Notes under the pieces: generated by a model
Told to the model about the DNA's origin: nothing
The model's database searches: none
The model's input: only the letters and a program-made list of their open reading frames with translations
Sequence record: OR258281.1
Length of the DNA: 64,000 nucleotides
Reading direction: 5' to 3' (one strand)
Part shown: positions 20,281 to 24,187 of the stretch, in pieces
Position numbering within the stretch: the first letter of the stretch is position 1
How the letters are laid out: the number at the start of each line of letters is the position of its first letter
Program-made: the position numbers and the translations under genes

Positions 20281-22422
20281 ATGCTTTTCTTCAAAAAAAT
20301 TAGTATGAAAAACTTTTTCTCATTCGGTAACGTTCCTCAAGTTCTAGAACTTGATAATAGTGCACTAACTCTAATTCTAGGCCAGAATAATGACGCTCTC
20401 AGTACTGATGGTGCTGAGGGTGCACGTAATGGTGTAGGCAAGAGTGCAATTATTCAGGGATTAGCTTACGGTCTGTACGGAAAAAGTATTGATAACAGTA
20501 TTAAAATACCAAACCTTGTTAACAAAATCAATGAAAAACACTGCGAAGTGAAAATTGAGTTTGAAAAGGATGGTATTTCATATCGTGTTGAACGTGGACG
20601 TTCACCAACATTCTTTAATTTCTACAAAAATGATAATATCGTTGAAGTAGATGAAAGTCGTGGTGAAATGAAAGACACACAGGAAGAACTAATTGAAGTA
20701 CTAGGAATATCTCAAACACTGTTTGAACATATAGTTGTGCTTAATACTAACGTACTGCCTTTCCTAGCTTTGAGTACTTCTAAACAGCGTGATATGATTG
20801 AGGAATTACTTGGTATTACTCAATTAACTGAAAAAGCAACTCTTCTCAAAGATATGTACAAGGAAACTAAACGCCTTGCCGATCAAGAGAAGTTTAGACT
20901 TGATACTGTATTCGAAAGTAACAAAAAGATTGAACAGAGTATTTCTGCACTGGAAGAACAAGCAGCAAACTTTGAACTTCATAAAGAAAAGAAGATTAAA
21001 GAAATTAACAACAGTCTAGAACAATTTAAAAACCTGAACTGGACTGAGTTGATGGAAAATGCTGTTAAATGTGATGCCATGCTAGTTCAAAATAAGAAAA
21101 TTGATGATCTTAAACGTAGCCTAACTGATTTAATGAATAAACGTACTAAGTACGATGAAAATATTAAATCACAGAAGAATGCAGTACTAAAGAATATTAA
21201 TGAACTTAAAAATATTGACATTAACGAAGAACTTGCAGCACATGAGAATGTAAAAGCATGGGAAGAATTGAATACCATTCATAAAGAGTTATCTATGAAT
21301 ACTCTTATGATAAATTCAAAGATTACTACTATAAATCAATACATTAAGAACAGTACTAACAAACTTGAAAAAGAGAATGCAGTACTAAACAGTCTTACTG
21401 ATATTGACAATGCTAAATGTCCTATGTGCGAACAGAGTTTAGAGCATACAGATTCACATGAAAGTATGTTATCAAACTGTAAGTCTAATATTGATGCAAT
21501 CAATGCAGAGATTCAGGGTTATAATGACGATATTGTAAAATTAAAGTCTGAATTACCTGAACTGTTTGACATGCCACCTAAACCAAGTACTCATTATCCT
21601 TCTGTGTCTGAAGCCAAGCTTCATGAACACAAATTGAGTACTTTAGAACAGGCATATAAAGAAGAAGGTACTAACCCATACGATGCTGATATTGTTGAGG
21701 TACAAAGTACTCTAGATACCATGGAGTATGTTGAAGTACCACAATATATTGATATTAGTTCAATCAGTATGTTACAGTTCCAGGAAACGGCATTAAAGAA
21801 AGATTTAGAACGTGAGAATGCGAGTACTAACCCGTATTTTCCACAAATTGAAGTACTAAAGAATAACTCGCTACAGATTCTTGACTATGATGAGTATAAC
21901 AGACTTGTCAGTACTTATGAGCATCAGGATTTTCTGACTAAACTACTTACAAACAAAGATTCATTTGTTCGTAAACGTATTATTGACCAGAATATTCAGT
22001 TCCTTAATAAGCGTCTGTCTTATTATATTGAGAAGAGTGGTTCTAACCATAACGTTGAATTCATGAACGACCTGAGCGTTGATATTTCGATGAATGGTAA
22101 ATCATATGACTACAGTCAGCTTTCCCGTGGTGAGCGAAATCGTATTATTATTTCTTTGAACCTTGCATTTCGTGATACTTACGAATCATTGTACCAGAAT
22201 ATCAATATTCTTTTTGTTGATGAGATTATCGATAACGGCCTTGATTCAAATGGTGTGTACAGTGCATGGAGTATTTTGCAGGATTTGAGTGCGACACGCA
22301 ACAAGAACATTTACGTTGTATCCCATCGTGAAGAACTTTTGAGTAAAGCAGCAAGCATCCTTAAGGTTCTAAAAGAAGATTCATTCAGTACTATTGAATT
22401 CTGTACTTCAGAAGATTTTTAA
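20281..22422 (+). CDS. gp46: Recombination ATPase subunit (gp46/Rad50/SbcC-like), 713 aa
   Basis: Walker A GARNGVGKS, coiled coil with CPMC zinc hook, signature LSRGE, Walker B LFVDE, VVSH. Confidence 0.95.
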   Translation: MLFFKKISMKNFFSFGNVPQVLELDNSALTLILGQNNDALSTDGAEGARNGVGKSAIIQGLAYGLYGKSIDNSIKIPNLVNKINEKHCEVKIEFEKDGISYRVERGRSPTFFNFYKNDNIVEVDESRGEMKDTQEELIEVLGISQTLFEHIVVLNTNVLPFLALSTSKQRDMIEELLGITQLTEKATLLKDMYKETKRLADQEKFRLDTVFESNKKIEQSISALEEQAANFELHKEKKIKEINNSLEQFKNLNWTELMENAVKCDAMLVQNKKIDDLKRSLTDLMNKRTKYDENIKSQKNAVLKNINELKNIDINEELAAHENVKAWEELNTIHKELSMNTLMINSKITTINQYIKNSTNKLEKENAVLNSLTDIDNAKCPMCEQSLEHTDSHESMLSNCKSNIDAINAEIQGYNDDIVKLKSELPELFDMPPKPSTHYPSVSEAKLHEHKLSTLEQAYKEEGTNPYDADIVEVQSTLDTMEYVEVPQYIDISSISMLQFQETALKKDLERENASTNPYFPQIEVLKNNSLQILDYDEYNRLVSTYEHQDFLTKLLTNKDSFVRKRIIDQNIQFLNKRLSYYIEKSGSNHNVEFMNDLSVDISMNGKSYDYSQLSRGERNRIIISLNLAFRDTYESLYQNINILFVDEIIDNGLDSNGVYSAWSILQDLSATRNKNIYVVSHREELLSKAASILKVLKEDSFSTIEFCTSEDF

Positions 22423-22425
22423 AAC

Positions 22426-22454
22426 AAAAAGGGAGCCTTTAGCTCCCTTTTTTT
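22426..22454. terminator. Bidirectional terminator between gp46 and endonuclease VII
   Basis: aaaaa-gggagc-cttta-gctccc-ttttttt; overlaps the EndoVII stop codon. Confidence 0.88.
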
Positions 22455-22921
22455 ATATCTAGCATATTTAATGCACCAGTCTTAATTAATTTACGAGCCT
22501 GATTTGCACGTTTAGTACCATTACTTTCGGGCTGGACTCCTAAATCAATAAGGATTTCCCGTTGACGGTCTGCACTAAGTGCTTTGAACTTGTTAACGTC
22601 AACTGACAGTGCTGTATGATGTACCGGATTGTCAGAGTAATCTTTTTCAAGATAATCGGCTAAGTTTCTTAGTACTTCATGCAGAGGCTTATCAGTGAGG
22701 TGTTTCATGTAACGGTTAAAGCTGTTTTGCACTTTACCTTCCCATGAGTTAACTTCACGCTGAAGAACCTGACGACAGTTCTGTTTACCGAAGTGCATAT
22801 GATCCAGTACTGGATCTTTAATCTGTTCTTTTGTAATTGGGTCAATGTTTTTCTGTTTCTTAAGAAGTTCATTCCTGAACTTAGCAGCTTCAGTGCTGTT
22901 TTTTAGTCTTTTATTTTCCAT
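22439..22921 (-). CDS. gp49: Recombination endonuclease VII (Holliday junction resolvase)-like, 160 aa
   Basis: PVLDHMH...CRQVLQREVNSWEGKV (D-H...N His-Me motif) and LRNLADYL; TCTAAATA late-like promoter at 22951-22958. Confidence 0.8.
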   Translation of the reverse strand: MENKRLKNSTEAAKFRNELLKKQKNIDPITKEQIKDPVLDHMHFGKQNCRQVLQREVNSWEGKVQNSFNRYMKHLTDKPLHEVLRNLADYLEKDYSDNPVHHTALSVDVNKFKALSADRQREILIDLGVQPESNGTKRANQARKLIKTGALNMLDIKKGS

Positions 22922-22965
22922 ATGTAGTACTCAATACTATAACATAATAGTATTTAGAAAATACA

Positions 22966-22994
22966 TGAAACATTCGTGAAATGTGTTCTATACT
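22966..22994 (+). promoter_or_regulatory. Early/middle promoter TGAAAC-N17-TATACT
   Basis: tgaaac attcgtgaaatgtgttc tatact; followed by about 640 nt with no credible ORF. Confidence 0.85.
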
Positions 22995-22996
22995 AC

Positions 22997-23590
22997 ATGT
23001 ATAAACCTGATTGGCGTACCCGTTTAGTCGTGGATTGATGATAAGAGTTTCATCCTTCTTGGTACGATGTATAAAACCTGATCCTATCGAAAACGTAGAT
23101 GGCAGATGAGTTGTCCAAACAGAACGAAGTGCAAATGAGACCCGTGTATATTACTCCAAGCGAACGCAGAGGACACGGCAATGCGGCACTATAAAGAGCA
23201 AAGATAATGCAAGTAATGCTCCATAGATAGACATATAAGGATCGCACCTTACCAACATGCATAAGGGATTCTATTACTAAAATAGATTTAGCGACATATT
23301 TTTATAATATAAATGTGTCCTGAATATTAGTACTTAGAGAGCTAATACGATTAATCATACAGTCTGTATTAGTAGAGTAGTGATGAACTACGACCGTTGT
23401 TAGAATGGCGATAGGAAGAAACAGGACAACCCGCTTCCGCTTACGATGTACAATATAGTTACGTCTAAAATTCGCTGTATGATATGTACGACGATACCAG
23501 CGTCAAATTTATATTTCACTTCCCTCTTGCGGGGGATAGAAATGTACTCATAGAACCGCGTCAAGTAGTAGTTGCTGTATAAGCTTTGTT
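22997..23590 (+). ncRNA. Candidate large structured non-coding RNA (or very long structured leader)
   Basis: Promoter-driven, no + strand ORF, 42% G+C at 23041-23220 against AT-rich neighbours, more than 10 stems with G-U pairs favouring the + strand. Confidence 0.5.
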
Positions 23591-23641
23591 ATTATTAAGT
23601 TTATAAAGTAATTAATATTAAATGAATTGAATGAGAAATGA

Positions 23642-24187
23642 ATGAACGTAGTGAATTCATTACGAATGAAAATTCTGACTTGCTTTAGCAAGGCATCTAA
23701 AGAGACATTAAGAATGTTAGAAAAGAACTATGAATATTTTATAGAATTCAAATATAATTTCCTTAATCTACTTCAAGAAATGCATAATTGGAATCAATGG
23801 TATTCCGTATTAGATACTACCAATTCATATGATAATATCAGATTTTGCTTTGATATTAAAGCATTTAACTCTAAGTACTATATCGCTATTTTTAATGAAA
23901 CATATAGTGGTTTGTTTGTTAGAATGATTAAAACTATAGCTTACACTAATGAAGATTATCGAATAAACTTTCATTTTAGTAACTATGACAAACTCAAACA
24001 TATAACTATATCTTTGAATCATGAATATGATATAATCATTGACATTACTGCTAAAACCTATACATTAAGAACTGTTAGGACTCAAGTACAACAGGCATTA
24101 TATGAAAATAGTGATTTCATTTTTAATATGTCATTCATCTATCCATTACAAGAAGATTTAAAGTACATTAAAGAAAACTTTTTATGA
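23642..24187 (+). CDS. Hypothetical protein, 181 aa (paralog family with C-terminal FIFNMS..YP motif)
   Basis: ORF track; very AT-rich; C-terminus NSDFIFNMSFIYPLQEDLKYI resembles that of the next ORF. Confidence 0.75.
   Translation: MNVVNSLRMKILTCFSKASKETLRMLEKNYEYFIEFKYNFLNLLQEMHNWNQWYSVLDTTNSYDNIRFCFDIKAFNSKYYIAIFNETYSGLFVRMIKTIAYTNEDYRINFHFSNYDKLKHITISLNHEYDIIIDITAKTYTLRTVRTQVQQALYENSDFIFNMSFIYPLQEDLKYIKENFL

Follow-up and report, generated by a model that had tools for sequence, protein, structure and literature searches.

Between positions 22922 and 23641 of the analyzed window, a stretch of 64,000 nucleotides (nt) from sequence record OR258281.1, lies an unannotated gap that almost certainly houses the gene for a large structured non-coding RNA. 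BLAST placed the window in the genome of Xanthomonas phage XaC1 (348,967 bp), a jumbo myovirus of the RaK2/121Q/GAP32 group; window positions equal record positions minus 186,000. The gap is bordered by an endonuclease VII gene on the minus strand (22439-22921) and by a hypothetical gene on the plus strand, with an annotated coding sequence (CDS) that starts at 23714. An earlier note on this DNA had described positions 22997-23640 as a promoter-driven, structured non-coding region of about 600 nt, with no plus-strand open reading frame (ORF) in about 640 nt, richer in G+C than its surroundings and followed by an AT-rich tract. These features of composition were recovered here. The gap contains no plus-strand ORF of more than 35 amino acids, the GC content is 0.41-0.44 at 23000-23300 compared to 0.24-0.30 downstream, and it is 0.245 at 23600-23799. 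The genes neighboring the RNA are as AT-rich as the tract that follows it. The direct repeat ATGTATAAA(A)CCTGAT is present at 22997 and 23067, and every complementary segment listed in the earlier note was found in the sequence.

Folding of the single sequence gave z = -2.4 for the plus strand, with none of 20 shuffled sequences folding equally well, and z = +0.45 for the minus strand in the same kind of shuffle test. Folding no better than that of shuffled sequence, which the earlier note had listed among the outcomes that would speak against its proposal, was not what these 20 comparisons gave for the plus strand. Taken alone this is modest evidence, and it is the comparative data that decide.

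A search of the rest of the genome revealed that XaC1 carries five paralogs of the RNA, 65-75% identical across about 600 nt, all of them on the plus strand and all within unannotated gaps:

Copy A: window position about 22998 onward (record 209 kb), plus strand; the copy studied here
Copy B: record 48.7 kb, plus strand
Copy C: record 14.8 kb, plus strand
Copy D: record 117.4 kb, plus strand
Copy E: record 303.2 kb, plus strand

The core of the RNA also matched about 71 phage records, representing some 70 RaK2-like jumbo phages, at four to five places in each and with 66-76% identity, nearly always in unannotated sequence. These phages infect Escherichia, Salmonella, Klebsiella, Erwinia, Serratia, Yersinia, Pectobacterium, Cronobacter and Xanthomonas. 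Further loci came from motif scans of IMG/VR, metagenomes and bacterial genomes followed by an nhmmer screen. The collection comprises 80 loci, 67 of them near full-length and 41 non-redundant (less than 95% identity). The endonuclease VII/baseplate hub locus holds a copy in XaC1, PBECO4, 121Q, GAP32, BF, fHe-Yen9-04, CBB and metagenomic phages, and the remaining copies fall into further syntenic locus types. In PBECO4, 121Q, GAP32, CBB and two metagenomic phages (L105 and L102) the genes on both sides of the hub-locus RNA lie on the minus strand, and since both neighbors are on the opposite strand this copy should constitute a transcription unit of its own. In the tree of RNA copies, the enteric sequences group by locus type and not by phage, and the paralogs therefore predate these genera. 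No neighboring protein is common to the locus types, the flanks being DUF6267, DUF7325, DUF5856, HNH or unknown proteins. The homologs share no reading frame, the longest stop-free frame in any of them being at most 113 codons, and a protein-coding reading of the region was consequently rejected.

The comparative evidence includes covariation, which the earlier note had proposed to seek in homologous intergenic regions. RNAalifold, run on 24 sequences, predicted 56 pairs, 35 of which exhibited double compensatory changes. Pairs were then counted on the 41 non-redundant sequences. Among 64 curated pairs, 97.7% of the cells were canonical, and 405 double-compensatory cells were spread over 43 of the pairs; the best of 500 column shuffles reached 146 such cells with 83.4% paired. 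A tool-made, independent alignment (A4) gave 279 double-compensatory cells against a shuffle maximum of 94. When the 3' partner was shifted by one or two columns, the paired share fell from 89% to 34-44%, and the 411 double-compensatory cells dwindled to 28-55; this control used a first-pass pair list in which P5 and P7 were still out of register. A scan of the 41 sequences for covarying column pairs, made free of energy terms, returned the same helices together with two pseudoknots. The helices contain 200 G.U pairs and only 14 A.C pairs, and therefore the plus-strand RNA is the strand that folds, in agreement with the suggestion in the earlier note that several G-U pairs work on that strand only. 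Invariant columns number about 100 in the alignment, and many of these are unpaired.

The fold of the predicted RNA comprises at least 14 helices; two of them are pseudoknots and one connects the 5' core with the 3' end. The parts of the RNA, all on the plus strand, are:

23004-23072: 5' domain, the CCUGAUUGG motif followed by a hairpin
23015-23020/23061-23066 (outer stem) and 23037-23041/23050-23054 (inner stem): the 5' hairpin
23073-23270: 5' core, near-invariant CCUGAUCCUAUCGAAA..GUAGAUGGCAGAUGAG, as defined by alignments A2 and A3, RNAalifold and pair counts
23083-88/23098-102: helix P1
23105-08 (GAUG)/23559-62 (CGUC): closing helix P2, invariant in 40-41 of the 41 sequences
23110-12/23123-25: helix P3, 23 double-compensatory cells
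23128-32/23186-90: helix P4, 36 double-compensatory cells
23142-45/23175-78: helix P5
23196-200/23218-22: helix P6, 67 double-compensatory cells
23262-68: invariant UAAGGGA
23271-23342: variable insert domain with a hairpin (23293-23301/23311-23319), not in c-type and D-type copies
23343-23482: 3' core, two pseudoknots and invariant GACCGUUG
23343-52/23361-70: helix P8, 70 double-compensatory cells
23355-60 (P8 loop)/23477-82: pseudoknot PK1, 66 double-compensatory cells
23377-80/23388-91: helix P9, 27 double-compensatory cells
23396-400/23426-30 (P11 loop): pseudoknot PK2, 12 double-compensatory cells
23407-11/23472-76: helix P10, 57 double-compensatory cells
23414-18/23434-38: helix P11, 41 double-compensatory cells, conserved loop AAACMGGRCAACCCG
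23483-23565: 3' tail with CGUCA motifs at 23501-05 and 23559-63 and hairpin P12
23510-23546: long hairpin P12, G/C core 23521-25/23531-35
23622-23692: optional 3' module, UGAAUUGA.., ACGAAUGAAAAUUCU and a CUUGC/GCAAG hairpin (23679-83/23688-92)

Pairing in the 5' hairpin is preserved through compensatory changes among the XaC1 paralogs, with GTACC/GGTAC, ATACC/GGTAT and GCACC/GGTGT in the outer stem and GATGA/TCATC, AGTACT/AGTACT and TATACA/TGTGTG in the inner one. The last of these requires G.U and therefore pairs only as plus-strand RNA. This hairpin is longer in the XaC1 lineage, other phages having a short hairpin in the same place. PK2 likewise occurs as GUUGC/GCAAC, GUUGU/ACAAC and GUUAC/GUAAC.

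The seven stems that the earlier note had proposed for the copy A sequence fared unevenly in this comparison. The stem cgtacc/ggtacg is the outer 5' stem, upheld with its inner companion by the changes just described, and gagca/tgctc corresponds to the strongly covarying P6. The stem gacatattt/aaatgtgtc is supported in part: it is maintained through sequence changes in the copies that have the insert domain, but alignment A3 shows the domain itself to be missing from some copies. Conservation without covariation characterizes two others: the ccgt/acgg portion of ccgtgt/acacgg is invariant, and in the long hairpin at 23510-23546 the G/C core is conserved but shows only C-G to U-G changes. The remaining two were not conserved and had to be abandoned. 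The two middle pairs of tattag/ctaata are canonical in just 1-2 of 17 sequences, and four of the five pairs of cgctg/cagcg in just 8-17 of 41; the 5' strand of the latter belongs instead to P10 and PK1.

The putative promoter that the earlier note had placed ahead of the region consists of the following elements:

22965-22995, plus strand: promoter, a scan match that includes a conserved block upstream of the paralogs
22965-22970, plus strand: ATGAAA, -35-like
22984-22995, plus strand: conserved block TGTTCTATACTA, containing the -10 element TATACT at 22989-22994

Transcription would start near 23000. By itself the copy A promoter scores 9/12, which is the chance level in the promoter scan, and the claim that it drives the region draws its strength from the block conserved ahead of the paralogs. 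The 12-mer TGTTCTATACTA is upstream of four of the five XaC1 copies, copy D having TATTCTATACTA instead. It looks like a phage promoter class because its 16 sites in the XaC1 genome are on the plus strand without exception. Within the window it occurs at 22984, 42167, 51546, 51849, 57314 and 62177. Other sites precede a tRNA cluster, at a distance of about 270 nt, and some protein genes. Copies outside the XaC1 lineage all have an extended -10 element, TGnTATAAT, at the same place.

The limits of the gene emerged from the comparison of an Escherichia coli chromosomal island copy (see below) with a copy of Serratia phage BF. The two are 80.6% identical from CCUGAUCC to ...CUCGUCAG and have no homology beyond. 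This span corresponds to window positions 23077-23565, with the lineage-specific 5' hairpin and promoter upstream. The universally conserved RNA thus appears to end at 23565, and the gene would span about 22998-23565, or possibly reach as far as about 23692, a length of some 570-700 nt. The earlier boundaries (22997-23640) lie close to those derived from homology, with transcription predicted to start near 23000, the universal core ending at 23565 and the optional module at about 23692. This 3' module is common to XaC1 copies A, D and E, many enteric copies and some islands. It can be read as a mini-ORF of 16 codons (23638-23688), MNERSEFITNENSDLL in XaC1 copy A and ..NENSLTFEEWQI.. in enteric phages. 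A coding role for this NENS...-like mini-ORF was rejected, since there is no third-position bias and the copies differ by frameshifts and stops; by this measure the module is conserved as nucleotides and not as protein. In copy c of Serratia phage BF the module is joined in frame to an ORF of 330 amino acids. The ORF that lies 3' of the RNA in the window has possible starts at 23642 (23642-24187, 181 amino acids) and at the annotated 23714 (157 amino acids), and its longer form would overlap the 3' module. Terminator-like hairpins with a run of 6-7 U were located at L009:1189-1206 and L081:1586-1610, with equivalents in c-type and hub-type enteric copies. They are not present in XaC1 copies A, C, D and E.

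The RNA is also found outside phages. Full-length copies without phage genes in their vicinity are present on six bacterial contigs (Buttiauxella, Silvania, Serratia, Enterobacter, an Enterobacteriaceae isolate and a 'Clostridium' fragment that is probably mis-binned) and on many metagenome contigs. Copies in small integrative islands of Enterobacteriaceae chromosomes are 73-81% identical to the phage RNA and define at least 16 loci of island type. Individual loci are L122-L127, L134-L136 (e.g., L134:3733-12232), L139, L142, L145, L146, L159, L167 and L168, together with L172:4753-15303. The fuller islands share a module in which an integrase gene is followed by the RNA in the same orientation; next come a CI-like S24 repressor gene, convergent to the RNA, and genes for an HTH_35 protein, a membrane protein, an LprI-family member and a resolvase. 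The integrase is of tyrosine type in some islands and a large serine recombinase in others. Among 5,426 complete E. coli genomes, two have a copy. In strain LR-29-1 the island is beside ffs, with an integrase fragment adjoining an IS3 insertion and with the PADLOC candidate defence genes PDC-M45. Island copies are polyphyletic in the tree, and therefore more than one transfer between phages and islands should have occurred; the E. coli copy is nested in a phage clade, which points to transfer from phage to island in that case. No capsid, packaging or replication genes and no toxin partner were recognized on the islands examined, and a search of plasmids returned no match to the RNA.

Few large and intricate RNAs of bacteria and their phages are known (the ribosomal RNAs, RNase P, introns, OLE, ROOL, GOLLD and raiA), and each of them opened new biology. 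The RNA described here has the attributes of large ornate RNAs as a descriptive kind: it exceeds 400 nt, is devoid of ORFs, has covarying helices and pseudoknots and retains long conserved unpaired stretches. A cmscan search against Rfam had been proposed in the earlier note. At the gathering score, neither the whole window nor seven island loci matched any family of Rfam 15, and the ROOL, GOLLD, OLE and raiA models gave no match even at E<=10 (positions 22800-23800) or E<=5 (the island copy). Comparability to ROOL and OLE, as the earlier note had it, consequently holds for size and ornate fold but not for membership. Permissive Rfam matches are attributable to chance, including VqmR on the wrong strand (26 bits compared to a cut-off of 76), miRNAs and a type I hammerhead (14.7 bits, E = 4.2, cut-off 34). 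The type I hammerhead core consists of CUGAUGA ... GAAA around three stems. The match reads CAGAUGA, so that core position U4 is occupied by A, and four of the five XaC1 paralogs have GAU in place of its GAA element.

Other known systems were set aside on similar grounds. RNase P RNA, tmRNA, 6S RNA, SRP RNA and tRNA-like RNAs are ruled out by Rfam, and ARAGORN finds no tRNA. A group I or group II intron does not agree with an intergenic position at every locus, an own promoter, unrelated flanks and the lack of an Rfam intron match. ToxI-like RNAs of type III toxin-antitoxin systems consist of units of about 36 nt repeated in tandem ahead of the gene for an endoribonuclease toxin; the RNA studied here has no tandem array and its neighbors vary. 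IscB/TnpB omega RNA (HEARO) and IS110 bridge RNA have no Rfam match in the region, and the neighbors of the phage copies are unrelated to one another. One locus type follows a small HNH gene and the islands have an integrase upstream, but this integrase is of tyrosine type in some islands and of serine type in others. The jumbo phage PA5oct, related to the RaK2 group, offers a parallel in the form of transcribed ORF-free regions, putative long non-coding RNAs: its ncRNA001-004, found by RNA sequencing, are 236-619 nt long, and 1-5% of the phage reads come from two of these RNAs (PMC7318152). Our comparison covered ncRNA002 and ncRNA004. Unfiltered nhmmer was negative and the signature motifs were not present in order, so neither is a homolog, and ncRNA004 is not a syntenic counterpart either, as it occupies a different locus. 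We found no description of the RNA in the literature searched; short fragments may be among the unnamed candidates of PMC10690425. By every test available, the family would represent an undescribed class of large structured RNA.

Comparison with the better known ornate RNAs is nevertheless instructive. ROOL (RF03087) and GOLLD (RF01998) resemble the present family in their length of 500-800 nt, their many conserved helices and pseudoknots, their lack of an ORF and their phage or prophage-like carriers, and they are presumed to act via tertiary or quaternary structure, their function not being established. They differ in their hosts, which are Firmicutes and rumen organisms instead of Enterobacterales and Xanthomonas. 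Jumbo phages, in contrast, have four to five diverged paralogs per genome at syntenic loci, and none of the five XaC1 copies adjoins a tRNA gene. OLE (RF01071) is similar in size (about 600 nt) and in its intricate conserved fold, and serves as a ribonucleoprotein scaffold. It is, however, a single-copy chromosomal RNA of anaerobic Firmicutes encoded beside partner genes (oapA and others), whereas the jumbo-phage RNA has neither a conserved partner gene nor a match to the model. ROOL, GOLLD and OLE are thought to act by their fold and not by base-pairing or control of a neighboring gene. Cages formed by ROOL/GOLLD-type RNAs have been reported from cryo-electron microscopy (bioRxiv 10.1101/2024.12.08.627333).

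Paralogs, orthologs, covariation and strand-specific G.U pairing all agree with the central proposal of the earlier note, a promoter-driven structured RNA of about 600 nt. Considered as a whole, the explanation we favor, with somewhat better than even confidence, is that of a promoter-driven structured RNA gene whose product acts in trans. The trans-acting structural mechanism taken by itself is a more tentative component, to which we assign slightly less than an even chance. The sigma-70 type of the promoter (with an extended -10 in enteric phages) suggests that transcription would be early and carried out by the host RNA polymerase. The RNA could then act in trans by way of its three-dimensional shape, serving a phage or host factor as scaffold or as binding partner: action in trans is suggested because the unit is isolated between opposite-strand genes at the best-conserved locus and its neighbors are otherwise unrelated, and action by shape because of the invariant loops, the pseudoknots and the closing helix. 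Diverged copies may supply dose or slightly different specificities. Islands may have captured a phage copy to block or exploit the same interaction, a suggestion prompted by repeated capture beside a repressor and defence-type cargo. The most elaborate version, in which the RNA is a central trans-acting part of RaK2-like infection (for example, a ribonucleoprotein subunit or assembly scaffold) and islands use their copies either as a decoy that protects the cell from jumbo phages or as a handle for satellites that exploit these phages, is speculative and, in our judgment, unlikely to hold in full. In this respect phage satellites (P4 and cos-type islands with a helper cos site) are comparable, being small integrative elements with a phage-acquired element, as is pseudo-ToxI in phages, an RNA mimic in phage-host conflict; the element shared here is, in contrast, a large structured RNA gene.

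Several observations weigh against this explanation. Transcripts of the family and their 3' ends are predicted from sequence. In the variable inserts the MAFFT alignments cannot be trusted, and because the curated pairs were selected on the very alignment that served for counting them, their contrast with the controls is somewhat inflated. Flanking genes, which vary by locus, offer no candidate for a partner protein. No intrinsic terminator turned up in the scan downstream of copy A, and many enteric copies have a terminator-like hairpin and U run between the two CGUCA motifs. Finally, the copies are dispersed over the genome (14.8, 48.7, 117.4, 209 and 303 kb) with promoters of their own, and no replication gene was recognized on the islands, both of which fit equally well with the main rival, an RNA-primed replication origin, which the earlier note had offered as its second possibility. 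Under that hypothesis a persistent hybrid of transcript and template near the 3' end would prime DNA synthesis, the four to five copies would be multiple origins of a 350-kb genome, and islands would carry the RNA so that an infecting phage replicates them. Synteny of the copies extends across genera, and near the 3' end there are an invariant G run and a hairpin, followed in copy A by AT-rich DNA. The layout resembles that of ColE1 RNA II and of the promoter-plus-unwinding-element origins of T4, with structured transcripts of about 550 nt made from their own promoter and, in T4, several origins; RNA II is close to the present RNA in both size and promoter-driven layout. The conservation of the jumbo-phage RNA is, however, far more intricate than that of RNA II, and its two pseudoknots and long invariant unpaired stretches exceed the known needs of a pre-primer. 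Homology between island and phage stops exactly at the RNA 3' end, and nothing is conserved downstream. No antisense regulator is evident. Iteron or DnaA-type arrays and tandem repeats are lacking, the region containing only a two-copy 11-nt repeat (23624-23645) and two direct repeats of a size expected by chance, and GC skew was rejected as an origin marker because it merely tracks gene orientation. We therefore regard an origin as unlikely.

A ribozyme and a cis-regulatory leader are less likely still. A compact, pseudoknotted core in which about 100 positions never vary and many of these are unpaired, in a family conserved across phage genera and the phage-island divide, would suit an RNA that catalyzes its own processing or the cleavage or ligation of another RNA, and the same phages have genes for RNA ligases, polynucleotide kinase and tRNA-repair enzymes. 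Yet no ribozyme family matches, the sole candidate being the low-scoring hammerhead with its broken core, and neither a conserved processing junction nor a substrate is evident, which leaves catalysis a distinctly unlikely account. A giant riboswitch or attenuator, in which the CGUCA motifs and the internal terminator-like hairpin form a switch, would explain why this U-run hairpin stands between the motifs in many enteric copies, why GAUG at 23105-08 is able to pair with either CGUC, and why no terminator separates copy A from the next plus-strand ORF. The hairpin and the alternative pairing do make two isoforms or a conformational switch possible. A leader should nonetheless precede a conserved gene on its own strand, and the downstream genes are unrelated across loci. 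No plus-strand gene follows the RNA at the endonuclease VII-hub locus of PBECO4, 121Q, GAP32 and CBB, the CI-like repressor of the main island family is convergent on the RNA, and several copies are without the terminator-like hairpin; control in cis is thus improbable. Least credible, to the point of near dismissal, is the reading as a decayed protein gene or as a repetitive DNA element, left over from a mobile element, that spread recently. Multiple copies, some on mobile islands, would fit such an origin, but the copies are 52-75% identical and hence not recent, they are syntenic, they have no frame in common, and no terminal repeats or target duplications accompany them. An excess of G.U over A.C would be meaningless for DNA or protein, and base pairs kept through double changes, i.e., covariation, exclude both forms of this alternative.

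The phages that carry the family infect E. coli, Salmonella, Klebsiella, Serratia, Erwinia, Yersinia and Xanthomonas, which provides tractable hosts and makes predictions testable in E. coli K-12. The combination of old paralogs at fixed loci of 350-kb genomes with island copies beside repressors and candidate defence genes is unusual, extends beyond what the reading of a single sequence could show, and suggests that the RNA takes part in a conflict of phages with hosts or satellites, which protein-centered annotation would miss. Were the decoy or satellite handle to prove true, conflict would be waged through a large folded RNA, perhaps by a new kind of satellite. About 3 kb of each jumbo-phage genome is at present left blank or given spurious small ORFs, such as XaC1_451.

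Minor observations concern the surroundings of the copies and the genome at large. The annotated XaC1_451, a CDS of 27 amino acids (L007:4749-4832) located within copy E, is probably a spurious call. Upstream of the D-type copy in XaC1 there is a gene for a small HNH endonuclease (L004:17689-18321), and its homologs (30-63% identity) hold the same place upstream of D-type copies in related phages, with a DUF5856 gene downstream. On the far side of the endonuclease VII gene in the window, an 11-bp hairpin with T runs on both sides (22426-22452) separates this gene (ending at 22439) from a convergent gp46-like gene (ending at 22422). It is probably a bidirectional terminator that overlaps the 3' end of the endonuclease VII ORF. 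The tetranucleotide GTAC is over-represented 2.5-fold in the RNA and 3.5-fold in the whole genome, so that its enrichment is not specific to the RNA. The XaC1 genome contains 3,978 occurrences (11.3 per kb) compared to about 1,133 expected from base composition, for which a modification or recognition motif, or codon usage, are possible causes.

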